Program-made: the position numbers and the translations under genes
Notes under the pieces: generated by a model
Database searches by the model: none
What the model was told of the DNA's origin: nothing
Seen by the model: the letters and a program-made list of their open reading frames with translations, nothing else
Shown here: piece by piece, positions 2,966 through 63,105 of the stretch
Layout: the number at the start of each line of letters is the position of its first letter
How positions within the stretch are numbered: the first letter of the stretch is position 1
NCBI GenBank assembly: GCA_965637545.1
Contig: OZ281500.1
Coordinates: 12,586,001-12,650,000, forward strand
Length of the DNA: 64,000 bases
Reading direction: 5' to 3'
From: Phallusia mammillata
Taxonomy: Eukaryota

Positions 2966-3075
2966 TTTTCTTCACCTAGCGGCAGTTTCTTTCCAACGAG
3001 CAAAGTAGAAAGCTTCTCTCGATCGGCGACAGTTGAAACTTTACTTTCAACGAGCAGTAGTTGAAAACTTCTTTA

Positions 3076-4462
3076 TGTAGACTCTGAACGGCCGACCTGC
3101 AAGGCTGAGCCTCACAAAGGGGTTTTTTCACGTTGAAACACGCCCCGCCCTTTCCCACACAAATCACACTTCCCGAATCTCGTGTAATAATCCACAGCGA
3201 CAACAGCGGCAACAACCACAACGTCGTACACAATCAGGAACGGACAGAAACAAGAATGAGAACGGAAACGGGAACGGAGACGGGAACGGTTTTCTAAACA
3301 AGAAAACGAAACACATTGACATATGTCAACGCACAAAAATGCCAATGTCTAACTTACAAACTATTTTGCGACACAGGTCAACAGGTACAGTTCACGTATC
3401 AACAGTTGCAAGACGATGAAACAATCGCTGCAATGACTATAGGAAAATACAGCATGCCATAAGTTACACATAAACGCCATGAATTAATTTAGGTCACAAG
3501 TCAAATTAAACACTCACCGACAATCACGGTAAACAGGCTTCACTTGAAGATTAATTAGTCAGTCGTCACAATATTTAATATAGCCTTAGTCGTCTCTAAA
3601 AATGTAACACAAACGAATTTACTTAATGCAGTTATAAATCACCTTGCTCGACCACGTTGTACAGTAAATGAATCAATCATTGCAACCAGGGTTGCCAGGT
3701 ACTGTCGGCTGGATTCGGACAGTATTTGTCTGAAAATCGGACATTTTAGGACAAAAAAAACGAGAGCGTAAAATTGCTAACAAGGTATCAATATCGAGGT
3801 GCCATCTGCCATTTTTTGTGCGTTTACGTTCCCCAAAGTGACGGACGTAAAATATGACGTCACTTATGCGTGCAACCACTAGAACTGAAATCCAAACTTG
3901 AAGCCCAACAAACGTCCTATGTTTGAAATAATATTTAGTTGGCAATTGCAACACGTTGCTGTAGTGTTTATCATTGGTTTCGCACCGTTTAAAAAATGTT
4001 TCGTCAACTTGTTGCTTCATATCACCTTAGATAACCATTTGTTACAATACAATTGCTTTGTACACAACAATGGTCATTCACTAGCAGACAATTATGTATT
4101 TAATGTCATAAACAAGGTACTAACCAAAACAAGTTGTACTTTTAAACCACGTTTTGTCGTAAAAAAGGGTTTGCAACCTTCAAAAAATAGGAAGGAGACA
4201 AAAAGTTATTCAATCAGCAAAATTCGGACATATTAGGACAAAAAACTAAACGTCCTAATGATTTTTACGCGTCGGACACAGCATGTGGAATTAGGCCAAT
4301 TTATCGTTTTTTGTCCGATTTTTAGGCCACCTGGCAACCCTGATTGCAACATACAGACAATAGCCTTCCAATTTTACTGTTACGCACATGGCGATTGTAA
4401 CGTCATAGCAGGGGAATAATGAGACAAGTTAATCATGCGTATCTGAACGTGGACATGTAACA
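3076..4462 (-). repeat. 5' LTR of BEL family 1 (about 720 bp without the MITE)
   Basis: TGTTACA start at 4462. The inner end is inferred at ...TCTACA (3076) because the following leader resembles that of family 2. The partner LTR is outside the window, so the inner boundary is unconfirmed. Confidence 0.6.
3687..4342. mobile_element. hAT-type MITE inserted in BEL1 LTR
   Basis: Perfect 14-bp TIR CAGGGTTGCCAGGT; 8-bp TSD ATTGCAAC (3679-3686, 4343-4350). Confidence 0.93.
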
Positions 4463-4467
4463 CTGCT

Positions 4468-5142
4468 TGTAACGTCAGGAATTTGCGCGCCTGGTACCGC
4501 GCTGGCGTCACACTAGAGAAGTCCAATTTCTGCAAACGCGTGAATTTATTTTACACTTCGACACGGTAATCACGTCACGTTCACCGTAGACACGACACGA
4601 CACGATAGACACGTTCAAGATAATCACGGTTTTCTGCAAAGAGAACATTCACTCAAAAATGCGAAACAGAAATTAAATTTATACAGGCAGAAATAAAGCT
4701 TACCAGAGTTTTGGACCAGGGTATCAAAGATAAACACAGTTTGATATCACCAGAAAGTGTTCTACACAGATAAAAAACGTAGACTTTTAATATACGGTTA
4801 ATTGCGATAAGACAACTTTAATGCAAATCAAGCTTACCTTGCAAAGGCAACATTAATCCTTTTCGTCAGAGTTTTTAAGTTTATAAAGCATTACCATCTA
4901 TTAATGACAAACAAATTATAATTAGTCACTTTCATTACTTTATCTAACGTTTGCAAATTAAAGTCAGCAACTAACAAACTACACGTGGTCCAAACTAAAC
5001 TCGATACTAAATGGCCAAAAGCACAGCATAGAGAAATAAACTACAATGATATTGTTACGTCATAGGGGATTCTGGCATTGTGGTGCAATCACACCATATA
5101 AGATGTGACGTAGGTTACGGTTGAGTGATTTACGATGTTACA
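4468..5142 (-). repeat. 3' LTR of BEL2 (675 bp)
   Basis: Matches 13020-13709 except for two substitutions and a 15-bp indel seen by eye; TGT...ACA termini. Confidence 0.97.
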
Positions 5143-5153
5143 TTCTCCCCCCT
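5143..5153 (-). other. Polypurine tract of BEL2
   Basis: AGGGGGGAGAA on the minus strand immediately before the 3' LTR. Confidence 0.9.
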
Positions 5154-5316
5154 AAATGTGTGCTTACATTTCAAACACATTTACAAACAAACCAAGAAAA
5201 CATCGAAACACGAAACAACGAAAACACACACGAAAGCTAAACAGTCGCGTCGCGAAACACCGTTGGTGAGCAAAGCTCCAACCTGGCGTATTTTAGAGTG
5301 CGGCATGTGAAATGCA

Positions 5317-8300
5317 CAGGGGCGGCTCGTGCTAGGGTGCTGCGGAGCTGCAGCACCCCCTAGATATTTTTACTTAATGGTCCTACCACAACAATACAGA
5401 TAACTTTCATTATACTGATTTTTTTATTCTTAAGTATAATTTTTACAAGTATAATTTCCGCCTTGATCGGCATTTTTTTCATTTAAAAAAAAAAATGCCA
5501 TTAATATGTTATCTATGGTGGAACTGCAGCTCCGGTTTCATGACGAATCGTGACGTTTCATGACGTTCTGCACTTGTGCGCATGCGCACTTCCTGTAGTT
5601 GTGTTGTCTGTTCCGGGTTTACTGTGCTCCAAAGCCAAACCCGTGTACTGTATTTTTAAGTTCGACAGTGAGTACAGTTACATGATTATTTTTGACGGTT
5701 AGTCGTGACTTTTTTAAGTGACTGTAAGTGGGCTTCAGTTTTTGCAGTTATCATTAACTCAAAAAGTGTATCTCACACCTTCAAAAAAAGGTCATCTAAC
5801 ACTTTGAAAAGTCACGATTAACCGTTATAATAAAAACCTGAATAAAAAGCTTAAGAAAAAATGGGATAAAACATCTGCTATTCCAAATATGTCATGCAGA
5901 AATAAGCAACAAGAAATACTCAGTTTTAGTTTTGAATGCTAACAAAGATAAAACAGCTTTGTGACTGTGGAGTTAAATGCCTCACTGAAATTCAGGCAAT
6001 ATTAAATGCAGAACAAGCAATTGCAGAAGCAACAGTAATTTTGAAACGCCTTAGTGATGGCAATTTCAAGTTTTGGTTTCTTAAAACACCATGTGGACAG
6101 CATTTGCAACCAAGTGCAATCTTGTGTATTGATATAATGGATGAACTGTTTGTCTAGTACAGGGGTGGGCAAACTACGGCCCGCGGGCCGCATGCGGCCC
6201 GCCAAATGTTTCCGAGTAACGCTGAATAGTAGTATGAGCACAGGCGCAGAGTTTTAAAAATACCGGGGGTGTGACTTGCCGATACCAATACCATGTACAG
6301 TATCTGTACCCGCACGATCAGGGTTTTTTTAAGGTTTGGTTTGGGTGACCGCTAAGTAGTTTTAAGAGACCGCAAGTGTTTCATTTAAATACCAAAAAAT
6401 AGCATTTCCAAATTTTGGGAAACCGCTGGAGAAATTTGGGGAAACACCTTAAAAAAAACACTGCCACGATACTTTGGAACTAAACACAGATACTTTTCAC
6501 GTGCTTTAGCCTGCCACGTTATTATGCAAATCATCACTTGACACAATTTCTTCGTTCGATAAAAGTAAAAGCGATTCACGTTTTCAGATACAGCCCACTT
6601 TGCACTGTTGACGCCCAAACTTTGGTACAAGGACTTCATTAACAAAAACGTGGTTCAGCCTTTGTTGCAACAAACACTTGTTTTTTTGAAACAATTACAA
6701 TTGTAGCGTTTCAACCAATGTTTGTACAATAATGAACAAGCGTATTTGCATAAAGCTGAAAATATACTACGTAATAATTTTGCGCAGGGGTGCATAACCT
6801 GCGGCCGCAATCTATTTTGCTAAATATTTTGATTTTCAAACTGCTAAAACAGATTTCGTGGGACTGGAAAAAAGATTACCAGTCTAGTAACCATATGCGC
6901 CAGGCTTTTTATCCGCTTATTATGTGCAAACAATGCGAAAAAACGGGGACTGCAATTGTCACAATACAGTTTATGACGTCATAAACCGTTAGCTCTGTTC
7001 AGCTAAACTTGTGCACAAGTTAGAAATTGTTAATCAGAGCATCTTAGGCGACTTTAAATGGTATATATATGATACAAACCTTATTCTTTACATCAATGTT
7101 TTACGAAACAACAAGCAAGCAATTGGCGACCGTTGGTGAAATACCATGCGGCCCGATAAGATTATAAAGTTTTGAATGCGGCCCTTGCACTGAAAAGTTT
7201 GCCCACCCCTGGTCTAGTAGCTGCTAAATTGCCGCACAGGAAATGTTTCTTAAGAATGGACATTCTACAGAGGAGATAGTAGTGACCAGCAAGCATATCT
7301 TATTGATAAAATAGTTACTGAAACTTTAAAAAAAAGAAACGCCAGTTAGCCAGCAATTTCTATGAGTCCCTCAAAGGCAAAACGATTCTTTTCAACACTG
7401 AAAAGGATGCAAACTTTTCTAGGGAACACCATTATTTTCAAAAGATTTGCACTTGCAGTGCTAGCTCTAAATAAAAAAAGTTTCTGAATTGTCATTTGGA
7501 AATCAAGGAAGAAGCTCAAATTTATTTTGATCAATTATTTTGCCCAAACTATAACTTTATGATTCATTTTGGTTGCAAAAAGGAAGCACAATGTTTAATG
7601 ATATGTTTTAAATTTAAGTGAGAGTGTTGTAAATTTCAAAGCTTGCAGAGTTTTGCACTTCAAAAAAAGGAATTATATGCTATTTACCACCAAGTAATGC
7701 AGCAAGTATAGCAATTAAGAAAGTTAAAAGCAATTAATGGTCTGTACACAAAAATTAAGAAAAGATGTTTCAATAAACAAGTTTTGACACAAATGTAATG
7801 TGGTTGTTAAATTTGCCAGTTATGATACTTTTGGCTCGTTTTTGTGTGTGGCAATAATCTGTGAAGTGTCATAGAATATGTTAAAAACGCTGATTGTGAC
7901 AATAAGTTACTAAAATGAAACATGGCCATATTAATGACTGAATAGCAAGTGTGTTAGTTAGTGATCATTGTTACAACCAGTTTTTCTTAAATGTTGTCCA
8001 ACTGAAATACTTCGACCTTTTTCGACTCATTTATTACTGACTTGTTTCTATGTATTGTTGTTGTGTTTTACCGTATGTACACCAGCGTCGTTTCGAGTGT
8101 CACGTGTGTTTTTTGTGCCACATTATTACTGCATGTTATTGAGTTTGGTCCGTCGCTGTGCAAGTAAACAAAATTCCCTAATGATGCCGTCTGCTGTTTA
8201 CACTCGTGTACATTATTGCGTAACAAAAATTACGTCACAATGGAGTTGCTAATTAACATTTGTATTACTTGTTTTTCTACACAAAACAATGGCTAGAAAA

Positions 8301-8398
8301 CTAGAAATGTGACTTTTCTATGTATTGCCAATATTTGTTTAATGAAGGCTAAAATTTGGAGCAGCACCCCCAGAAATTTTAGGCACGAGCCGCCACTG
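5317..8398 (+). mobile_element. Defective hAT DNA transposon inside the BEL2 3' region
   Basis: TIR CAG(G/T)GGCGGCTCGTGC; 8-bp TSD GAAATGCA (5309-5316, 8399-8406); decayed hAT C-terminal dimerisation motif at about 7362-7450 (KRFFSTLKRMQTFLGNT, cf. ERxFSxLKRIKTxLRNT). Confidence 0.9.
6160..7211. mobile_element. Charlie/Buster-type hAT MITE nested in the hAT element
   Basis: TIR CAGGGGTGGGCAAACT; TSD GTCTAGTA (6152-6159, 7212-7219). Confidence 0.93.
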
Positions 8399-8516
8399 GA
8401 AATGCAGCAAACAGCATAGCGTCCGTGATATTTCTTCTTCCATCAGCATCAGGGTCTTGTGCACCGCAATTCAGGGCCAGTTCGACGACTGCGTGGCCTA
8501 AATGCGTCGGATGCAC

Positions 8517-11500
8517 TTATTGGCATTTGGTGCTTGCCTCGCAGGGCAAGCACAATTTTGCAATCGGCCGTCTGTACGTGGAACCAGATTGCGTTTTAAC
8601 ATTGACTTGGCGGACAACACCGTGTTTGTCCGGAAACGCGTGCAGAATGCGTCCAATCTTCAGGTTATGAAGAGATGAATATCGATTCAGCAGACGATCG
8701 GTTGACCCTGACTGTGCAGAAACGTTTACAACAATCCTCTTCCGCTCAGCTGGCTGGAACTCTGGAGGAAGCTGAGTCTTTAACTCCGGCGGGGTTGGCC
8801 ATCGATCTTCTGTCTGCCAAAGAAACTTTGGACCAGTCAGCCATCGGGAGCGGATAAGCTTGCGCACGGACAAACCTCGCGAAGCATCATCGGCAGGGTT
8901 TAGCTGGGAATTCACGTGCCTCCATTGATCAGGACTTGTCTGCCGATGAATTTCGGCCAACCTGTTGGCAACAAATGTACCAAAGCGTTTACTTTGGTTA
9001 TAAATACTTTGTCGGACGGCACACGAGTCTGTCCAAAACACGGACTCGCAGTTATCAAATTTTAATTGGCGTCGAAGCCATTTGTCCGCTTTCACAGCTA
9101 AGACAGCAGCAGCAAGTTCAAGCCTCGGAATGCTTTCAGTTTTCGGGGGTGTCACCTTCGATTTGCCAAATAGAAACGAGCAGTGGACTTGTCCATCAAC
9201 ATCTTCCAGACGAAGGTAGGACACAATTCCATAGCCTTGAGTTGAAGCATCCGAAAAATGGTGCATCTCGCACTTCGCGACTGAGCCGAAAGTAGGAGGC
9301 TTGAAGCAGCGGGGAAGTGTTAACTTCTCGAGCTCCGGCAATTGAGAAAGCCAGCGTCGCCATTCTTCAATATCGTCTTTAGGCAGCTCGTCAACCCACC
9401 CCAGCTTCTGTCGGACTATTTCCTGTTGTAACACCTTAGCAATCAAAGTTACAGGTGCGGCAAAACCCAAAGGGTCATAAAGCGTGTTAACAGCACATAA
9501 AATATTGCGTCGGGTAAATTTCTTGCCTTGCATCGTGTCAGTTATGCTGAATCCAAATTCGTCACTCTGTACCCGCCAGTAAACACCTAGAACGCGCTCT
9601 TTAACGGAAGCGTCCAAGTTTACATCGGTCAGCGATTTTGCTCTCTCTGCCTCTGGGATTTGATCCAAGACACGTTGATTGTTAGATAACCATTTGGTCA
9701 GGCGAAATCCTCCTTTCTTCAGCAAGGCACGTAGTTGCGTGACCAACTCGGTGGCACGCTCGACTGTTTCGGCTGACGTCAAACAATCGTCTACGTAAAA
9801 ATCATTACGGACGATGTCGCCAACATCTTTATCAAACATTTTTCCAAACTGCTCGGCGGTTTCACGCAAGCAGAATGTGGCGCAGCTGGGCGATGACGTT
9901 GCGCCAAAAATGTGCACGAGCATACGATGAACGGTGGGCGTTCGGCATAGATCTCCCCCTGGCCACCACAAAAACCTTAAAGCATCAATGTCAGACTTGT
10001 GAACGCGGACCTGGTGGAACATTGCTTCCACGTCCGCTACCAGAGCAATACTGTTCATACGAAATCGTTCCAAGACACCGATTAAACTATTAACCAAATC
10101 GGGTCCCTGCAGCAAGGCGTCGTTAAGAGACAATCCTCTGTGCTGCGCTATCAAAAACGATGCGTACCTTGTCGGGTTTGCGCGGGTGGCAAACTGGATG
10201 ATGTGGCAAATACCATTGAATATTGTCCAAAGCGTCCTCGGCTTCTTCATTTGTAACTTCTTCTGCGTAGCCCTCATCAATGTAGTCCTGCATCTTCTGG
10301 ACGTACTTGTCTTTAAGAGAGACATCGCGCGAGAAGCGTTTCTTCAGCGACCAAAGCCGTCGTTCAGCCATGTGACGACTGTCTTTCGGTAAAGTGACAT
10401 CACTTCGCCACGGAAGAGGCAAATAAAAATGTCCGTCCGTATGTTTCACTAAGCTCTTCATCATGCGTAGCACCTTTCGGTCTTCAACTGACGTAGGAAA
10501 GGGCAAGTCGTTAGGGTCTTGCATAAATTCGTCCACCCAAGAATCACCGCTTAGTTCCTGGGTATTGCTTCTAAAGAAGTTCACCGAAATATTATCAACA
10601 GCAGGATAGCAGACGGATGGGCCAACAAGCGACCATCCAAGCGGGGTTCTCGCAGCAAAAGGTTGCTTGCGTTCACCTGTTCTCATTTCAAGTACTCTAT
10701 GTGCATATGGGACGTCAGTGCCGATAAGTAGTAGCACCTCTCCTTCGTCCAACTCAGGAAATTCCAAACCCTGGAGGTGTGGAAACCTGTTCACCTCCGA
10801 CTTCGTTGGCGTCGGATTTGGCTCAACCGGTATGGTGTCGATGGACAGAGCGTTGTCGACACTAATCTCTTCATTTTCATCTAGTGACAAAACGCTAAAA
10901 CTTGCGCTCATTCCGCTATGGTTCGCCGGTCTTCTTCCGACGCTAGACATCGTAACTTGTTTTGGTCTTCCTCTTATTGGAAGCAGATCTGCCAACCTTT
11001 TGTCATAGAAGCTTGTGTCAGACCCTTGGTCGAGGAACGCGTACGTTATGATCTCCTGACCGTTCGACCGAATTTTTACTGGAATAACAGAAAAGTACGA
11101 CGAATGACAGTTCTTTATCGCGTTGCACCTGGCTGTAGAACTCGATGTCTGTCCATTAGGAGGTTCGCTGCGCGGAGCACTGTTGTATCTCTCAGGAGCA
11201 TGTGCGTATGTCCTGGAACGCACGGAATTTTGCATATTTTCATGTAGCAACGGGTGGTGTGAAAGGTTGCAACCTCTGACAGTACAGGCACTGGGCTGGG
11301 TACACACCCTTGACGTATGTCGATAACCAAAACAGTTAAAGCACATAAACTTATCTCTTAGAAACTCTCTTCTCTGCACCGTGGATTTGCGTGGCGCTTC
11401 TTTTCTTCAGCCTTTCGGGAAACACACAATTGACCAGGTAAAGTATTTACAACGGCAGACTCTTCGACGAACTCAACGAGATCGGCAAAATCCGCTTCTC

Positions 11501-12903
11501 TACCAGTTTTCCTTACAGTCTGCGCGACTCGGCGGCGCCAGAGCTTTTGCGACTCGTACGGGAGCCTATTTGCAAGAGCCACTAAACGGTCAACTGTGTT
11601 AAGATCAGCAAAATTCCCTAGCTGGCGAAGTACCAGCAGACATTTCCTCATAGTCTGCGCATAAGTGCGCATAAGTGCGCATACCAGTAGCATCGTCCGG
11701 TTTTAAGTTCGGACCCTTAGTTAACTCTTCAACAAAAGCTCTAGCAACTATGTAGGGCTTACCGAAGTTCTCATAAAGAATGCTTCTTGCCTTGGTATAA
11801 CCTTCTTCCGTATCTAGAACAGAGCAATGTGCAATTAAAGACCTCGCTTTTCCTTTGCACTGGTTTATAAGCAGTGTTAGTCGCATAGCATCGCTTCGTG
11901 TTTTGCATTAGAGATTGGATTCAAAGTAGCGTACGAACATCCAATAATCTGTAGGATTGCCCGAGAACGTCATGTGATCGGGCTTCGGCATACTCATGCC
12001 CTCTCCAACTGCCTTCACTATGCATGGAAGCACAGCTGGGTTTTCTTCGTTCACTTTAACAACTGATTGAGCTTTCGTCACAGGTACACGTACATTGGGA
12101 CGCATGCTTTCCTGTGGTTCTTCTCTATCTCGGATAGGAAACGTACAGTTCCGAGTAGCAGAGGATGTCATTTGACCGTCATTGGAGGCTACATCGGGGA
12201 AAACCGATACTACATCTGGAATCTGTTCCTCGTCGGACCTCTTGTCCATTTGTGATAATCGTTCGTCGTCTTCATTTAGGATTCTAGCTCTTGCGTCGGC
12301 AGCTTGAAACTCGTATTTTGCCTGTAACTTTCGCTTTTCGTTTGCGAGATCGTTTTCTTCATCGACTTGTTTGAGGCGAAGTAATGCAAGTTCCCGCTCT
12401 ACCTTTGCCTCTCGGCGACTTCTCGCGGAAGCGGATGTGCTCGCGCTAGATGTACGTGAGCGGCCAGACCGTGATGTCCTACTAGAGACAACAGTAGGGG
12501 CCCTGAACTGCGGACTTAGCACAAGTTCTGGCAGTGAGTCAGGCATTTTGGAAGGCGGTAGCTCTGATACTCTATTTTCGAATTCAAGTTTGCTGTGTTC
12601 AAGAGATTTTAAATCTTCTTTGGAAGCAGCAAGTTTCTCTGGGTCGTTACATGAATTAATAAATGCATCGTACATACTGTGAAGTATCGTGTAGTTTTCG
12701 TCAATTTGTTTTTGAGCCACTCGCAATGTGGAGTGCTCTTTATTTAGAATGCCAGTTTCAGCCACAACATACCAGCTATTCAATTTATCTGCACATCGGC
12801 GTAGATCGTCGTAGGTTGGGACCGGTTGTGCAGCAAATGGTCTCAAACGTGTAGGCACCGGCGATTCCATCGGAGATAGTGTTTTTTTCAAATCTTCAGC
12901 CAT
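8517..12903 (-). pseudogene. BEL2 gag-PR-RT-RNaseH with integrase core deleted
   Basis: Gag from 12903; in-frame stop at 11908; 10-bp tandem duplication at 11656-11683; deletion of the first zinc knuckle near 11380; small frameshifting deletion near 10140. RT (FYVDDCL) and RNase H (HHFSDAS, IPRLELAAA, FWTDS, NPADDASRG) are present, then a jump YSSLHNLK to IGRILHAFPD skips integrase. Confidence 0.92.
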
Positions 12904-13019
12904 CGTGGCGAAAGTCGCTTTATAGATAACTCTGGAATCCTTGTATATAGTAGCCTCTGGAAACTTTATTTCCAGGTAACTCTGAAAACTTTATTTTCAG
13001 CAAACTCTGAAAACTTTAA

Positions 13020-13709
13020 TGTAACGTCAGGAATTTGCGCGCCTGGTACCGCGCTGGCGTCACACTAGAGAAGTCCAATTTCTGGAAACGCGTGAATTTA
13101 TTTTACACTTCGACGCGGTTCAATAGGACACGGTAATCACGTCACGTTCACCGTAGACACGACACGACACGATAGACACGTTCAAGATAATCACGGTTTT
13201 CTGCAAAGAGAACATTCACTCAAAAATGCGAAACAGAAATTAAATTTATACCGGCAGAAATAAAGCTTACCAGAGTTTTGGACCAGGGTATCAAAGATAA
13301 ACACAGTTTGATATCACCAGAAAGTGTTCTACACAGATAAAAAACGTAGACTTTTAATATACGGTTAATTGCGATAAGACAACTTTAATGCAAATCAAGC
13401 TTACCTTGCAAAGGCAACATTAATCCTTTTCGTCAGAGTTTTTAAGTTTATAAAGCATTACCATCTATTAATGACAAACAAATTATAATTAGTCACTTTC
13501 ATTACTTTATCTAACGTTTGCAAATTAAAGTCAGCAACTAACAAACTACACGTGGTCCAAACTAAACTCGATACTAAATGGCCAAAAGCACAGCATAGAG
13601 AAATAAACTACAATGATATTGTTACGTCATAGGGGATTCTGGCATTGTGGTGCAATCACACCATATAAGATGTGACGTAGGTTACGGTTGAGTGATTTAC
13701 GATGTTACA
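13020..13709 (-). repeat. 5' LTR of BEL2 (690 bp)
   Basis: Near-identical to 4468-5142; contains AATAAA on the sense strand; followed by the gag leader. Confidence 0.97.
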
Positions 13710-14214: not shown

Positions 14215-15515
14215 TCCCCAAAGTTTGTCCGACTCGTTTTTCCATCAAATCCTTGATGGATTTGGATGAAACTTACACAGATGGTAGATGTAGTTATGTA
14301 GATGTGCATCCCACTTTGTTTTTGTTGATAACCCCAGTATTTACCCCGCTAGACCTCTAAAATAGGTATTTTTTCCCCGAAGTTTGTCCGACTCGTTTTT
14401 CCATCAAATGTTTGATGGATTTGGGTGAAATTTAAACAGATGGTAGATGTAGTTATGTAGATGTGCATCCCTCTTTGTTTTTGTTGATAACCCCAGCAAG
14501 GGCGTCCGCACATAGGGGCAAATGGGGTCAGCTGACCCCCCCTGGAAAATTTTTGGATGAAAAATGAAAAAGCGAGAACATGCAAAAATAGGCAATTTTC
14601 TGAAAGAGGGAGGAGTAAAGGTGATACGAGTGATGGCTGGCTGGTCAAGCTCTCCGATTGTGATCATCACCCTTTTCGGGAGTATCCCACCCTCTATTAA
14701 TTTACGAAGATACCTACAAGCTACCCGTAATCGCAAAATTTGACAACTTGAGCTCCTGTACCCTCAGAACCACATTACTAGTGTGGGCACTGGCTTTATC
14801 TCACATAAATCTGAAGAAGGATAATTCACAGTTTCAGATAAAATCTATAAAATCATTATCCAATAACCTATCAACGCGACGTTCCGGATATTTCACTTTG
14901 TTGATGAACTCGTTAGCGTCCTCCTGAGCATGACAATGCCAAGCACTACTAACATGGTTTCGAGCAGAGTTATGGAAATTTATACTTTATACATGGAGCA
15001 CTGGTGAATGCGCCAGTTGTGTCACGATGAATAGGCTGCCGAAAGAGCACACACAATTTGCACATGCGCCCTCTTAGGAGAGGAGAATACGCTGGCCACC
15101 GAAAGGGCAGAGTGAACCCTCCTTGACCCTCACTAACCGAAAACCTGCGGACGCCCTTGAACCCCAGTATTTACCCCGCTAGCCCCCTAAAATGGGTATT
15201 TTCCCCCGAAGTTTGTCCGACTCGTTTTTCTATCGAATGTTTGATGGATTTGGCTGAAATTTACGCAGGTGGTTGATGTAGTTATGTAGATGTGCATGCC
15301 ACTTTGTTTTTGTTGATAACCCCAGTATTTACCCCGCTAGCCCCCTAAAATGGTTTTTCCCCCCAAAGTTTGTCTGACTTGTTTTGCCATCAAATGATTG
15401 ATGGATGTGGCTGAAACTTATACAGATGGTAGATATAGTTATGTAGATGTGCATCCCAATTTGTTTGTCCGGATAACCTTAGTATTTACTCCGCTAGCCC
15501 CCTAAAAGGGGTGAG
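14215..15515. repeat. ~158-bp minisatellite, about 4 units, interrupted by a MITE
   Basis: Unit starts (CCCC(A/G)AAGTTTGTC) recur near 14216, 14375, 15204 and 15361. Confidence 0.9.
14497..15159. mobile_element. hAT-type MITE/deletion derivative
   Basis: Perfect TIR CAAGGGCGTCCGCA; TSD AACCCCAG (14489-14496, 15160-15167). Confidence 0.93.
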
Positions 15516-57055: not shown

Positions 57056-57932
57056 TGTTACATCGCCTTGTACATATGTTTATGTTTTCTGTGTTTCCCG
57101 CCAGTAGCCTTGATTCGTGTGTATGACGCAGTGTTGTGCAACCTGATACATTGTCTGGCACACTATCGGTGATTGTGATGTCACAACTTTGACATTGTTT
57201 ATTGGTAACACGTCTTGTAAGCAAGACCGCCTCGTGTTTATTAGTGACTGGAACTTACAGCGTCTGCATGCGTTTTTTAACTGGTCATTTATGTTTGTTT
57301 TTTGTGTAACAAACAGGAAAATTATGCTGTTTAGAAACTGAATCGTCCAATGTGTGACTTGTATATTTAGTGATCGGTAAGCATATGTTTAAACCTTGTT
57401 GTGACCTTTTGGATTTGAATTTATATGAAACCTGTATTCAGACGTGAATTCCGCCGTCGTCCAACCCCGTGTTATTCTGAACCGAACTGTGTTATTCCGG
57501 TAAGATTATTGTTGCTTAAGTTTGCCGTCAGTCACTAGTGTGATTAAGTGATGTTTATATGTGATGTTATTAGATGCTGTGTTTACAGACCTTCTACTGA
57601 TCGCTTGCATTTAAACGACTCCAGTCCTTTAATAGTTTGGTAAGCGTAAATGTCATTGAAATTCTCCTTCTGTTGCCTTGTCTTAATTTGAACATTTTTT
57701 GTAGAAACCGCCTTTTGACCCCTTGTACTCGCCGTGCTGCCATACTCTCGAGCGCCATCTTTCGGCTATATTGTAAAATAAAAGAGTTCGTTATATAGCT
57801 GCTGGCGTCTTGGAGTTTGAGCGCAAGGAAAGGCGCGTTAAAGACAATTTTAGGAACACAAGCGATCGCCCCTGTTGTGCTGTCTGGAGGCGCATGGAGT
57901 CACGCCTTCCGATAATTAAAGACAGCGCAACA
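57056..57932 (+). repeat. 5' LTR of BEL3
   Basis: TGTTACA...CAACA; AATAAA near 57777. Confidence 0.97.
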
Positions 57933-57975
57933 TCGTTTGAAACTTCTGGACACTTGAACACCCACGGCTTGTTGA

Positions 57976-60267
57976 TTGACGTCAAGCATGGAAAACTTCA
58001 CAATGGAAACTGACAAAGGCGCCATTCCTGCGCCTGAGTCACATGACTCACTCTCCACTGTCGAAATCACTGACAAAGACAAAATTTCCAGTTATACATA
58101 CGCTTGGCAACAAGCTTGTTTGCGAGTTGAAGAATTAATGCTAAAAACCGAAAATGTCACCCTCGTAAGGGAGTTTGTTCTAGTGATTGAAAGAACCTTC
58201 AGCGATCTTGTCGCCGCGTATGCCCCCTTTGAGGAAGGTAACGAAGCCATGTCTCAAGCACGACGGGCATGCCAACAGGATAAACGTGAACTGGATTCCC
58301 GTGTACAGGAATGGTTCGTAAACGTCGAGAAATCCATGGGTCGCCACGAAACTCGATCGAGTTACATGTCCAGCTCCCATTTCGGTTCGGCAAGTACTCG
58401 CACGTCTGGTTCGACGGAAAGTTGCCGAAAAGCTGCCAGGGTACGGATGCGCGTAGCTCGCTTGTCGCGACAGCAACTCGATGAAGATGTCGCCTTAGAA
58501 ACCCAACAAGCTGACATGCAAGCCGCTTTCGCTAAGCAGCAAGCCGCTTTCGAAAAGCAGCAGGCCGCCATCGATGCCAAACGAAGAATAAAAAATAGGG
58601 ACAATGAAGTCGCGTTGGCCGAAGCCGAGTTCCTTGCTTGGGACGAAGAGTTGGAGAACGAAGGTAGACCGGTCGTGCACCAACCACAGATTAATGACTT
58701 GTCGCCACCGGTTGCATCACTTGGCAATTGTTCCAGGGAGCCCGTATATTCTCCACCACGTTCATCCGCTGGGGCCCAGACTCCGACAAATCCCGTAAAA
58801 ATGTCACGCCCGCAAATTTCGAAAATGGATATAAAGCCTATACTTGCTCCTGCTGTTGTTCCACCTGTCGAAGGGTCGCGTACCGATTCCGACTCCTATC
58901 CTCTATACATGTACAAACCGCGTGCTTCTTCCCCGCCTCGATGTGCTCCCAACACCGATTTCGTTCAACAACAAATAGTCCTGCCTCAGCCGGCCATCAA
59001 GAAGTTCGACGGCGACCCGTTGAACTACTGGTCGTTTGTTCGAGCCATTGAGTCGCATGTTCATCGCAGAACAAAATCCGAAGAATCGCGACTAGTTTGC
59101 TTGCTTCAATACTGTGAAGATTCTGTTGCTGACAAGCTCGAAATCTACAGCAAGGATGCAGTCTCTGGTTACTCAAAGGCGCGTTCCCGACTGTATTATG
59201 ATTACGGTCAACCACATATTGTTGCCAATGCTTGCGAACGCCGGTTAAAGCTTTTTCCGCCCGTTAGACAAGGTCGACCAAAGGAACTTAAGGATTTTTC
59301 TGACTTGCTTGAAAAATGCCGTAGTTCTCTGGAAGACAGCCAAGAGTTCGCAAGTTTAAACTCACTAGATACGTTGAAGCAACTCATCCGGAAACTTCCA
59401 TTTCAGCATCGAGAGAGATGGGTGGAACACTCTTTCCAGGTGCTTGAGGAAACCGGGAGACAAGCTGGATACCTTGCGTTTACAAGTTTCGTTGTGCGGT
59501 GCGCCCGTGTTGTCAATTCACTGTTTGGGTCCGAAGCGGTCTACGAAGTCGTGCGCGAAAAAACGCCAATCGAGCCAAAACGGAGTTCAAGAGCCGCTAC
59601 GTACAACGTCTCATCATCGAAGTTTAACAGGGCACGTTCTGACACACCGCCTGTTCCCGCTCCGTGTTGTGTCTGTTGTAAACTGTCACATGATTTGTCA
59701 ACGTGCCCGGACTTCGACAAAATGACCTTACAAAAACGTCGCGAGGTTGTAACCTCTAATGGCCTTTGTTTTAAATGTCTTTGTTCAGGGCATCGTTGCG
59801 GAAATTGTCCCTGTCGAGAATCGTGCTCCGTTGAGGGTTGCATTAGCACCTTTCATCATACGAAGCTGCATGGTGCATTTCAAAGGAAACAGGTCGTCGG
59901 AAATGATGAGAACCCTGTCATGGAAACGACTACCCAAACGGTTTCTAGTATGAAGGCGTCCACCAGTAACTGCGGAGTCTACCTCAACGTCGTGCCGGTG
60001 AAAGTCAGACATAACGGTATCGAGGTAAATACGTATGCCTTCCTGGATCAAGGCTCTACTTCGACATTTTGCGAACAACGACTAATTGACAAACTCGGCC
60101 TACAGTGTAAGGGTCGAAAAATATGCTTAAGCACGCTTACCGATCAATCTCGAGTGTATCAAGGTTCCACGATCTCTTTCACTGTTACTCCGCTTGGTGG
60201 AGGAAAGCCTCTGGTCCTTAACGAAGTCCTGTCTATTGATAAAATTCCTGTATCGCCCGCGACTTGA
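57976..60267 (+). CDS. BEL3 gag-protease ORF (763 aa), truncated by deletion of RT
   Basis: FDGDPLNYWSF, three CCHC-type knuckles, AFLDQGSTSTF; ends at the deletion junction near 60255. Confidence 0.9.
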   Translation: MTSSMENFTMETDKGAIPAPESHDSLSTVEITDKDKISSYTYAWQQACLRVEELMLKTENVTLVREFVLVIERTFSDLVAAYAPFEEGNEAMSQARRACQQDKRELDSRVQEWFVNVEKSMGRHETRSSYMSSSHFGSASTRTSGSTESCRKAARVRMRVARLSRQQLDEDVALETQQADMQAAFAKQQAAFEKQQAAIDAKRRIKNRDNEVALAEAEFLAWDEELENEGRPVVHQPQINDLSPPVASLGNCSREPVYSPPRSSAGAQTPTNPVKMSRPQISKMDIKPILAPAVVPPVEGSRTDSDSYPLYMYKPRASSPPRCAPNTDFVQQQIVLPQPAIKKFDGDPLNYWSFVRAIESHVHRRTKSEESRLVCLLQYCEDSVADKLEIYSKDAVSGYSKARSRLYYDYGQPHIVANACERRLKLFPPVRQGRPKELKDFSDLLEKCRSSLEDSQEFASLNSLDTLKQLIRKLPFQHRERWVEHSFQVLEETGRQAGYLAFTSFVVRCARVVNSLFGSEAVYEVVREKTPIEPKRSSRAATYNVSSSKFNRARSDTPPVPAPCCVCCKLSHDLSTCPDFDKMTLQKRREVVTSNGLCFKCLCSGHRCGNCPCRESCSVEGCISTFHHTKLHGAFQRKQVVGNDENPVMETTTQTVSSMKASTSNCGVYLNVVPVKVRHNGIEVNTYAFLDQGSTSTFCEQRLIDKLGLQCKGRKICLSTLTDQSRVYQGSTISFTVTPLGGGKPLVLNEVLSIDKIPVSPAT

Positions 60268-62095
60268 ATTGACCGCCGCTGTGCTTGCTGCAAAACTTGA
60301 TCGCTTGATGAGAAAGGAACTGGACTTGCCAATTACCCGTTCAACCTTCTGGAGTGATTCCACTGCTGTTTTACATAGCATCCGTAATGCTACGAAACGT
60401 TTTCCTGTGTTTATAGCCAACCGTTTGGCCGAGATAGAGAGGTTGACTGACGTTTCTCGCTGGAGGTACGTTCCAACTAAAGAAAACCCTGCAGACGATG
60501 CTTCCAGAGGATTACCTGCCACATCTTTCGTCGGGTCACGTCGCTGGTTAAAAGGGCCGTCGTTCCTTTTGGAGTCGGAAGAAAATTGGCCTGTGCAATC
60601 AGTGCCAACCCCTGAAGTTCCCGCAGAATTTAAGCCTCTTATCGAAAGGACTGCTGGGTCTTTTGCAGTCGATGTTTCAAGATCGACTTTTTCTGTTGAT
60701 CGCATTGTCGAGCATTACTCAAATCTGCATCGGCTAAAGAAAGCAGTGGCTTGGTTGATCAGATTTAAGACTTATCTGAGTCCTGGGATAAGACAGTCAA
60801 TCAAACGCACTGCTCTTGATGTGTGTGAACTTGAAAATGCTGAATTGGAACTTGTCAAGTATGTGCAACGGAAACACTTCGGCTCACTGCTATCGTCTTT
60901 GACTCAACGAGGCTGTCCGAAAAGGTCCGATTGCAGTTCCGCAGTGTACAAGCTAAACCCTATCCTCAAAGATCAACTCATCCTGGTTTAGCGCACACTT
61001 GGACATCTATTAGAAAAAAATACTGGATTGCAAAGGGGGGCGTTGCTGTTCGTCGCGTTCTCGGAAGATGTTTGCCCTGTCGTCGTCGCAGTGCTAGACC
61101 AGGACAGCAAATGATGGCTGATCTACCACCGGCCCGTCTTGGTGTTGCTGAACCTCCGTTTTCAAATGTCGGAATTGATTATTTTGGACCATTTGGTGAA
61201 ACAAGGGCGCAGTGAAATTAAACGGTACGACTGCATATTCACTTGTCTTACAATCCGTGCTGTACACTTGGAAGTCGCCCACAGTTTGTCTACCGATTCG
61301 TTTATTGCTGCTCTTCGTCGTTTCATCGGGCGCCGTGGAGCACCCGTTCACGTCTACAGCGATAACGGTACAAACTTTGTTGGCGCAGAGCGCATCCTGC
61401 GAGAGTCACTACGAGACTGGAACCAGTGTCAAATTACTGAATTTCTCCACCAGAAAGGAACGTCATGGATTTTCAATCCCCCTGCTGCGAGCCACATGGA
61501 TGGTGCATGGGAACGGATGATACGGTCTGTTCGCCGAATCCTGTCTTCAATTACGTCCTCCCAAGTGATGACCGACGAAGCTTTGGAGACATTGCTTGTG
61601 GAAGCTGAGGCTATAATCAATTCTAGACCCCTGATACCTGTTAGGTTTGATCACAGGGATGAAGAACCGCTGGACCCGAATCATCTGTTGCTGATGAGAG
61701 GTTCCCCGAATATGCCACCGACAATTACCGATGCGAAGGACTGCTACACAAGACGTCGTTGGCGGCAAGTACAGTTTCTAGCCGACCAGTTCTGGCGCCG
61801 ATTTGTGCAGGAGTACTTGCCCGCCGTTGCTACTCGTTCCAAATGGCACGAGAGCCAGCCGAACTTTGAGAAGGACGACATCGTTCTACTGGTTGACGAT
61901 TCAAAATGCCGTTCAAGGTGGTTGGTTGGACGCGTTGTCCGAACTTATCCCGACGAATCTCAAAAGGTACGCACTGTGCTCGTACGGACGAGCGGTGGTG
62001 TGCTCCAACGGCCGATCGCCAAGCTTTGCCGCATCGTTGATTCTGACGAGAGCTTAACACCGACCTCGCCGAGCATTCGCAGCTCGGACTGCTAG
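60255..62095 (+). pseudogene. BEL3 RNase H C-terminus and integrase, frameshifted
   Basis: RLELTAAV..FWSDS..NPADDASRG; truncated zinc-finger region (HPGLAHT..CLPC); GIDYFGP then a frameshift; SDNGTNFVG, WERMIRSV, EAEAIINSRPL, DUF5641-like C-terminus. Confidence 0.9.
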
Positions 62096-62228
62096 ATGGA
62101 AGCCAAATTGAGTTTTCATAACAATAACTGTCCGACAAGAAATCATCGCCTCATTGCGATGCACGCGCGATTGGCGATGTTGTGTTTGAAAAAAATGTGT
62201 CACGTTGCTCCCACATTTTGGGTGGGAG

Positions 62229-63105
62229 TGTTACATCGCCTTGTACATATGTTTATGTTTTCTGTGTTTCCCGCCAGTAGCCTTGATTCGTGTGTATGAC
62301 GCAGTGTTGTGCAACCTGATACATTGTCTGGCACACTATCGGTGATTGTGATGTCACAACTTTGACATTGTTTATTGGTAACACGTCTTGTAAGCAAGAC
62401 CGCCTCGTGTTTATTAGTGACTGGAACTTACAGCGTCTGCATGCGTTTTTTAACTGGTCATTTATGTTTGTTTTTTGTGTAACAAACAGGAAAATTATGC
62501 TGTTTAGAAACTGAATCGTCCAATGTGTGACTTGTATATTTAGTGATCGGTAAGCATATGTTTAAACCTTGTTGTGACCTTTTGGATTTGAATTTATATG
62601 AAACCTGTATTCAGACGTGAATTCCGCCGTCGTCCAACCCCGTGTTATTCTGAACCGAACTGTGTTATTCCGGTAAGATTATTGTTGCTTAAGTTTGCCG
62701 TCAGTCACTAGTGTGATTAAGTGATGTTTATATGTGATGTTATTAGATGCTGTGTTTACAGACCTTCTACTGATCGCTTGCATTTAAACGACTCCAGTCC
62801 TTTAATAGTTTGGTAAGCGTAAATGTCATTGAAATTCTCCTTCTGTTGCCTTGTCTTAATTTGAACATTTTTTGTAGAAACCGCCTTTTGACCCCTTGTA
62901 CTCGCCGTGCTGCCATACTCTCGAGCGCCATCTTTCGGCTATATTGTAAAATAAAAGAGTTCGTTATATAGCTGCTGGCGTCTTGGAGTTTGAGCGCAAG
63001 GAAAGGCGCGTTAAAGACAATTTTAGGAACACAAGCGATCGCCCCTGTTGTGCTGTCTGGAGGCGCATGGAGTCACGCCTTCCGATAATTAAAGACAGCG
63101 CAACA
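62229..63105 (+). repeat. 3' LTR of BEL3
   Basis: Apparently identical to 57056-57932. Confidence 0.97.

Follow-up and report, generated by a model that had tools for sequence, protein, structure and literature searches.

Self-primed reverse transcription is documented for Tf1/Tf2 of Schizosaccharomyces pombe and their relatives in the Tf1/sushi group of Ty3/gypsy elements. In Tf1 the first 11 nt of the RNA pair with the primer-binding site (PBS) and RNase H cuts at the end of the duplex (PMC7175516). BEL/Pao elements, in contrast, are assumed to be tRNA-primed: the ICTV profile of Belpaoviridae describes an 18-nt PBS complementary to the 3' end region of tRNA-Arg or tRNA-Gly, and describes their replication as poorly understood (PMC8742986). 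The copia-type elements use an internal tRNA-iMet fragment and have a PBS that does not start with TGG. In retroviruses, LTR (U5/R) sequences pair with the leader around the PBS and influence initiation, as in the U5-leader and U5-IR stems and the HIV-1 primer activation signal, and the placement of the splice donor separates genomic from subgenomic RNA. Here we describe BEL/Pao families of Phallusia mammillata whose PBS position is the exact complement of a site in the element's own LTR. In seven of the ten families sampled that site is split by GT...AG intron-like segments and would exist in one piece only after their removal, which points to self-priming rather than tRNA priming.

The window analyzed is a stretch of 64,000 nt (GCA_965637545.1, contig OZ281500.1, positions 12,586,001 to 12,650,000), and all coordinates below are counted from its first letter. 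The element in question, BEL2, lies on the minus strand. Its 5' LTR is 13709..13020 (690 nt, TGTAAC...GTTACA), a boundary at which LTR-only matches elsewhere in the genome also end, and its 3' LTR is 5142..4468 (675 nt); the two are 97.5% identical with one 15-nt indel. The target-site duplication is AGCAG and a polypurine tract, AGGGGGGAGAA, sits at 5153..5143. The ORF at 8517-10325(-) carries RVT_1, the Pao-type PF05380 Peptidase_A17 domain (E = 1.6e-44) and DUF5641, which makes this a BEL/Pao element by Pfam and not a member of the Tf1/sushi clade of Ty3/gypsy. This copy is damaged, since a contig from another copy joins position 8399 to the 3' LTR through 166 nt, which shows that 5154-8398 is mostly foreign insertion.

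In element sense, the 5' LTR contains a TATA-like box, TATAAAC (13452..13446), 48 nt upstream of the first donor, from which the transcription start is inferred, on sequence alone, to lie near 13422. A short first exon is followed by a predicted 76-nt intron 1 (13404..13329, GTAAGC...TGTGTAG), a 58-nt exon 2 (13328..13271) whose last 8 nt are AAACTCTG (13278..13271), and a predicted 70-nt intron 2 (13270..13201, GTAAGC...TTGCAG). Exon 3 starts with AAAAC (13200..13196), followed by the conserved, non-complementary CG. An AATAAA poly(A) signal at 13102..13097, about 80 nt before the LTR end and downstream of both introns, implies that the introns lie in R. The 3' LTR carries the same intron 2 (4703..4634), flanked by AAACTCTG (4711..4704) and AAAAC (4633..4629). 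Joining the exons around intron 2 gives AAACTCTG/AAAAC, where the slash marks the junction. The joined 13-mer, AAACTCTGAAAAC, is the exact reverse complement of GTTTTCAGAGTTT at 13014..13002, which begins 5 nt (TTAAA) after the LTR end. A 12-nt copy of the motif lies at 12989..12978, in the next 24-nt repeat of the leader. The leader (13019..12904) is made of tandem units of about 24 nt, each of which holds the motif plus a partial sense-like copy (CTGAAAAT) that can form a local hairpin; the number of units varies from 1 to 5 among copies, and the gag ATG is at 12903..12901. The original prediction, which claimed that splicing creates this 13-nt complement, that a 12-nt copy recurs and that the unspliced halves are 70 nt apart, was correct in every sequence statement.

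The match is far beyond chance. We aligned 13 genomic copies of BEL2 that are 79-100% identical. The splice-site consensus of intron 1 and the boundaries of intron 2 are conserved in all 13, the left half of the complement is invariant in 12 of 13, and 12 of 13 keep 11-13 nt of the complement at the PBS position. A shuffled BEL2 leader reached 13 nt in 0 of 500 trials, even when any GT..AG deletion of 40-300 nt in the LTR was allowed, and across families shuffled leaders reached the observed length in 0-14 of 500 trials per family.

Whether the relation recurs in other BEL families had been named in advance as a test, and it does. The genome holds at least 150 PF05380 hits, many in uninterrupted frames of about 1900-2137 codons. 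We retrieved the 5' LTR end and leader of representatives and then of further copies of each family, with every LTR end fixed from matches that stop at the LTR boundary. All ten families sampled, comprising about 108 copies, carry a perfect complement of 10-15 nt between an LTR-internal site and the PBS position 2-7 nt after the LTR, the LTR site being 100-310 nt upstream, and about 100 of the 108 copies keep at least 10 nt. In seven families the LTR site is split by GT...AG segment(s). Besides BEL2 (13 nt, gap 70 nt), these are BEL1, (AA)TAGTTG/AAAAC with leader motif GTTTTCAACTA(TT), 10-13 nt and a gap of 63-65 nt; the MVESQ family, AGTTG/AAAAAC with GTTTTTCAACT, 11-12 nt and a gap of 220-229 nt (about 227 nt); the MSQSNV family, (A)CAGTTG/AAAC with GTTTCAACTG(T), 10-12 nt and a gap of 62 nt; the MAADDPE family, CAGTCG/AAAAAC with GTTTTTCGACTG, 12 nt and a gap of 64-67 nt; BEL3, AGTTTG/AAAC with GTTTCAAACT, 10 nt and a gap of 62-69 nt; and a family found later, family x, AAGTTG/AGAAC with GTTCTCAACTT, 11 nt and a gap of 168-171 nt. 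In the six families whose exon 3 starts with a run of three to five A, this run is followed by CCG, whereas exon 3 of family x starts AGAACC. In three further families the complement is unsplit, at an offset of 2-3 nt: 15 nt, TCACAGTTAAAAAAC, in 5 of 5 copies; 10 nt, CTTCAGAAAT, in 4 of 5 copies; and 10-11 nt, CCGTTTTAAA(T), in 8 of 10 copies. The LTR ends of these three families are confirmed by LTR-only matches.

Two of the other split families are present in the same window. The BEL1 5' LTR (4462..3076, minus strand) has its last intron at 3357..3294 (64 nt), with the exon end TAGTTT (3363..3358) and the exon start AAAAC (3293..3289). Other copies end in TAGTTG, so that this copy has a G>T change at the last exon base. 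The BEL1 motif at the PBS position, GTTTTCAACTA (3068..3058), lies 7 nt after the LTR end and complements TAGTTG/AAAAC over 10-13 nt in 18 of 19 family copies, while the window copy has one mismatch. The BEL3 5' LTR (57056..57932, plus strand, 877 nt) is 100% identical to 62229-63105, and its last intron, 57640-57704 (65 nt), is flanked by AGTTTG (57634-57639) and AAAC (57705-57708). The BEL3 motif at 57935..57944 begins 2 nt after the LTR and reads GTTTGAAACT here and GTTTCAAACT in the eight other family copies; this window copy therefore carries a central C>G mismatch to the junction in spite of its identical LTRs, which counts against the self-priming reading given below.

The two sides of the complement covary between families. 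In the left half CTCTG occurs with CAGAG, AGTTG with CAACT, AGTCG with CGACT and AGTTTG with CAAACT, and in the right half AAAC occurs with GTTT, AAAAC with GTTTT, AAAAAC with GTTTTT and AGAAC with GTTCT. In a matrix of the six split families compared, which did not include family x, own-family pairs of junction and leader score 10-13 nt and cross-family pairs 0-10 nt. Within one unsplit family, a single copy carries a compensatory pair, LTR C>T with leader G>A, which keeps 10 of 10 pairs. No within-family covariation was found in the split families because the junctions are invariant inside each family, and old decayed copies simply lose pairs.

The segments have the features of spliceosomal introns in all seven split families: the donor is GTAAG, GTATG or GTACG, the acceptor is a pyrimidine-rich tract plus YAG, and lengths are mostly 62-70 nt. 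Evidence of their removal comes from the MSQSNV family, a sister family with a 62-nt intron homologous to intron 2 of BEL2. Its predicted spliced junction (23 nt, up to 2 mismatches) occurs ten times in the genome, against zero for the reversed control. The alignment shows ten LTRs in which the 62-nt last intron is missing exactly at GT..AG and in most of which the 62-nt first intron is missing as well. These include both LTRs of one element that surrounds an uninterrupted 1978-codon frame, a third LTR of the same type, a diverged intron-less sublineage at four or more loci, two of them with the leader attached, and one LTR that lost only the second intron. The LTR introns of this family are thus spliced in vivo at the predicted sites, spliced RNA has been copied into new LTRs several times, and elements with a permanently contiguous complement went on to multiply. 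For BEL2 itself, however, a 22-mer spanning the junction, with up to 2 mismatches, found no intron-less copy in the genome. Contigs from four sequencing runs, which are only guessed to be RNA, retained both BEL2 introns and showed no joint at either, including 13200/13271, although contigs cannot show absence. These intron-retaining contigs also extend into U3 and so come from the 3' LTR context.

No TGG lies within 13 nt of the LTR end in any of the ten families, a test that rests on the invariant CCA end of tRNAs rather than on the host tRNA-Arg and tRNA-Gly sequences themselves. Room for another PBS is scarce, since one family's whole leader is only 25 nt. ARAGORN found no tRNA-like fold in any LTR or leader, a search against Rfam found nothing in the window, and the only two host tRNAs compared, which were found by chance beside a BEL2 copy, gave a background complement of 4-8 nt. 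RNA folding predicted the junction:PBS helix for spliced BEL2 alone, with 13 of 13 pairs (probability 0.75, plus 0.24 with the second copy of the motif), and not for the unspliced leader. In the other five families tested the motif prefers a local hairpin partner and the helix costs +0.9 to +7.1 kcal/mol. Because primer annealing usually needs a chaperone, we treat this result as neutral for priming, and did not use it as positive evidence, but it is negative for spontaneous masking.

We read these results as Tf1-like self-priming of minus-strand synthesis, with a probability of about 0.55. In this view the 5' part of the element's own transcript folds back, or pairs in trans within the RNA dimer, onto the PBS, is cut at the end of the duplex, after ...AAAAC and before the conserved CG, and its 3'-OH is extended through U5. 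The only support for this putative RNase H cut is the conserved end of the duplex, which is always ...A(3-5)C followed by the two conserved, non-complementary bases CG, a natural place for the cut. If the TATA-like boxes are the promoters, the released RNA would be about 65-90 nt, roughly tRNA-sized. Under the standard scheme of reverse transcription the plus strand would re-copy the PBS from the primer in each cycle, so that a change in the LTR site would be carried into the PBS, which would explain indel-exact covariation without double mutations. The same scheme would explain why introns persist, because everything upstream of the cut would be rebuilt from the 3' LTR copy of the RNA as long as that copy stays unspliced, and intron-less progeny would arise only when it too is spliced. 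The partly spliced LTR that lost only its second intron fits this scheme, as do the intron-retaining contigs that reach into U3. What the sequences themselves establish is the complementarity, its position, its covariation, the absence of a TGG-type PBS and the reality of splicing in a sister family; that the pairing primes DNA synthesis, where the RNA is cut, that splicing is required and that the 3' copy stays unspliced are inferences. The original prediction's interpretation is partly supported: of its two hypotheses, the comparative data favor the one in which the spliced R region primes in place of a tRNA. A stronger reading, which the evidence does not exclude but which we regard as tentative and somewhat less likely than not, is that initiation of reverse transcription is gated by the spliceosome in the seven split families, with splicing and replication coupled without loss of the introns. 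If so, this would be the first self-priming system outside Ty3/gypsy and the first primer encoded across a splice junction.

The alternative that remains possible, although unlikely, is that the pairing is a long-range structural helix of the 5' untranslated region, analogous to the retroviral stems and serving dimerisation, packaging or translation control, while an unidentified host RNA, such as a tRNA fragment or a bipartite tRNA contact, does the priming. LTR-to-leader stems flank the PBS in retroviruses, the leader motif also pairs with local partners in the tandem hairpin units, and the exon/intron boundary CAGTYG/GTA resembles a tRNA D-loop. However, the complement covers the PBS position itself, the motif differs between families in step with the family's own LTR, which a shared tRNA would not produce, and exact indel-level covariation is explained more simply by copying of the primer than by two independent mutations under selection. 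It is less likely still that the leader pairs with the two exon flanks of the unspliced 5' LTR intron and so controls splicing, either hiding the donor and acceptor or bridging them, so that the 5' and 3' LTR copies behave differently. The pairing does abut both splice sites exactly in seven families and only the 5' LTR has the leader nearby, but three families have the same complement with no intron at that place, intron-less lineages keep it, the halves are 168-229 nt apart in two families, and their predicted pairing probability in unspliced RNA is about 0.00-0.01.

The original prediction's second hypothesis, that spliced RNA masks the PBS or packaging region so that only intron-retaining RNA is copied, is comparably improbable and is not supported. 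The folding of spliced BEL2 and the retention of introns in all BEL2 LTRs are in its favor, but the three unsplit families, which have 100%-identical copies, and the intron-less lineages have multiplied, some of them very recently, the helix is not predicted in the other five families tested, and the hypothesis leaves the primer unexplained. The variant of the first hypothesis in which the free 3'-OH of the 5' exon, the splicing intermediate after step 1, is the primer is disfavored and very unlikely. The 5' exon end alone gives 5-8 nt of complement that ends at a natural 3'-OH, yet the exon-3 half covaries with the leader, so that the ligated junction is what pairs, and unsplit and intron-less elements have no such intermediate. 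A chance match in A/T-rich, low-complexity sequence can be set aside: the motifs are A/T-rich, and loosely defined split matches reach 12-14 nt for one very A/T-rich leader in cross-family tests, but the recurrence in ten of ten families at a fixed position, with compensatory differences and splice-consensus boundaries, refutes it.

In the literature searched, which was incomplete, we found no description of BEL/Pao self-priming, of introns inside LTRs serving replication, or of a PBS complement encoded across a splice junction. A whole genome's worth of BEL/Pao families whose PBS tracks their own LTR would extend self-priming to a second LTR-retroelement superfamily. The split version adds a replication signal that would exist only across an exon-exon junction inside the LTR, and so offers a concrete reason for the otherwise puzzling persistence of introns in LTRs. 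Intron-containing, partly spliced and intron-less lineages coexist in one genome and constitute a natural experiment. In practical terms, LTR annotation tools that look for tRNA PBSs will mis-score such elements.

As in Tf1, the PBS here is complementary to the element's own transcript rather than to a tRNA, the duplex is of similar length (10-15 nt here), it has a sharply defined end where a cut would leave the priming 3'-OH, and the LTR part upstream of the cut would be restored from the 3' copy. The differences are that these elements belong to another superfamily, that the complement probably lies about 60-90 nt from the RNA 5' end, judging from the TATA-like boxes, rather than at nucleotides 1-11, that it is interrupted by predicted spliceosomal intron(s) in seven families, that the leader carries tandem copies of the PBS motif with local decoy partners, and that cleavage and priming are inferred by analogy. 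With canonical Belpaoviridae the elements share TG...CA LTR ends, a 5-bp target-site duplication, a polypurine tract, gag-pol with the Pao RT/RNase H region and a putative priming site a few nucleotides after the 5' LTR, but none of the ten families has a TGG-type site next to the LTR. The retroviral U5-leader and U5-IR helices and the HIV-1 primer activation signal flank or assist a tRNA-occupied PBS, whereas here the helix would occupy the PBS position itself and no tRNA site is evident. The copia PBS matches a host tRNA half, whereas here the motif differs by family and tracks the family's own LTR. Finally, as with the retroviral splice donor, splicing in the 5' leader would change what the RNA can do in replication, but in retroviruses splicing removes the packaging signal, whereas here splicing would create the primer sequence and the intron lies inside the LTR.

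The BEL2 copy was found to carry about 3.2 kb with no long ORF between the pol end and the PPT (5154-8398), whereas in another copy position 8399 is joined to the 3′ LTR by only 166 nt. The stretch 7900-8400 is an extremely high-copy repeat in the DNA-like sequencing run, and a Pfam search found no integrase core in the 602-aa pol ORF. The BEL2 3′ LTR abuts the 5′ LTR of BEL1 with only the 5-nt AGCAG between them (4455-4475), and BEL2 sits immediately upstream of BEL1, head to tail. Just outside the BEL2 5′ LTR, at 14216-15515, lie four copies of a 155-nt repeat in two tandem pairs that are 81-90% identical. In sequencing run X5, the part of the LTR from exon 3 to the LTR end (13020-13191) has 10-20 times the depth of the rest of the element and a contig runs from the LTR end into unrelated sequence, which may represent a solo or 3′ LTR read through into a host transcript. 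Elsewhere in the genome, in contig C8 at about 13.59-13.60 Mb (retrieved sequences L002, 33-921, and L016, 1802-3091, of genome G000), one BEL2 copy is inserted in a tandem array of alternating tRNA-Thr(UGU) and tRNA-Trp(CCA) genes with a period of about 400 nt.

The BEL3 copy at 57056-63105 has 877-nt LTRs that are 100% identical, yet it is only about 6.05 kb long and its pol is broken into several frames. It also has a C>G change in the PBS motif that the eight other family copies lack. A compensatory pair was observed in copy L112 (G000:C4:25564398-25564843) of the L031-type family, one of those in which the LTR site is unsplit: the LTR site changed from CTTCAGAAAT to TTTCAGAAAT and the leader from ATTTCTGAAG to ATTTCTGAAA, keeping 10 of 10 pairs. 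About 3.9-kb elements with LTRs of another BEL family, the L040-type, were found at G000:C1:6568183-6572326 and four similar places. These keep the first 16 nt of the leader, that is, the spacer plus the self-complementary motif, and then diverge, and are likely to be non-autonomous derivatives that retain the putative priming site.

LTRs of the MSQSNV BEL family at G000:C1:7163491 and 7170303 (copies L122 and L123), and also those designated L124-L131, lack one or both 62-nt introns exactly at GT..AG. One pair flanks an uninterrupted 1978-codon frame, a diverged intron-less sublineage sits at four or more loci, and one LTR, L127, lost only the second intron. Although it may be a coincidence with the donor consensus, the exon/intron boundary of the last LTR intron in several families (for example those represented by L037 and L034) reads CAGTCG/GTA or CAGTTG/GTA, where the slash marks the boundary, and in this it resembles the D-loop/box A of many tRNAs.
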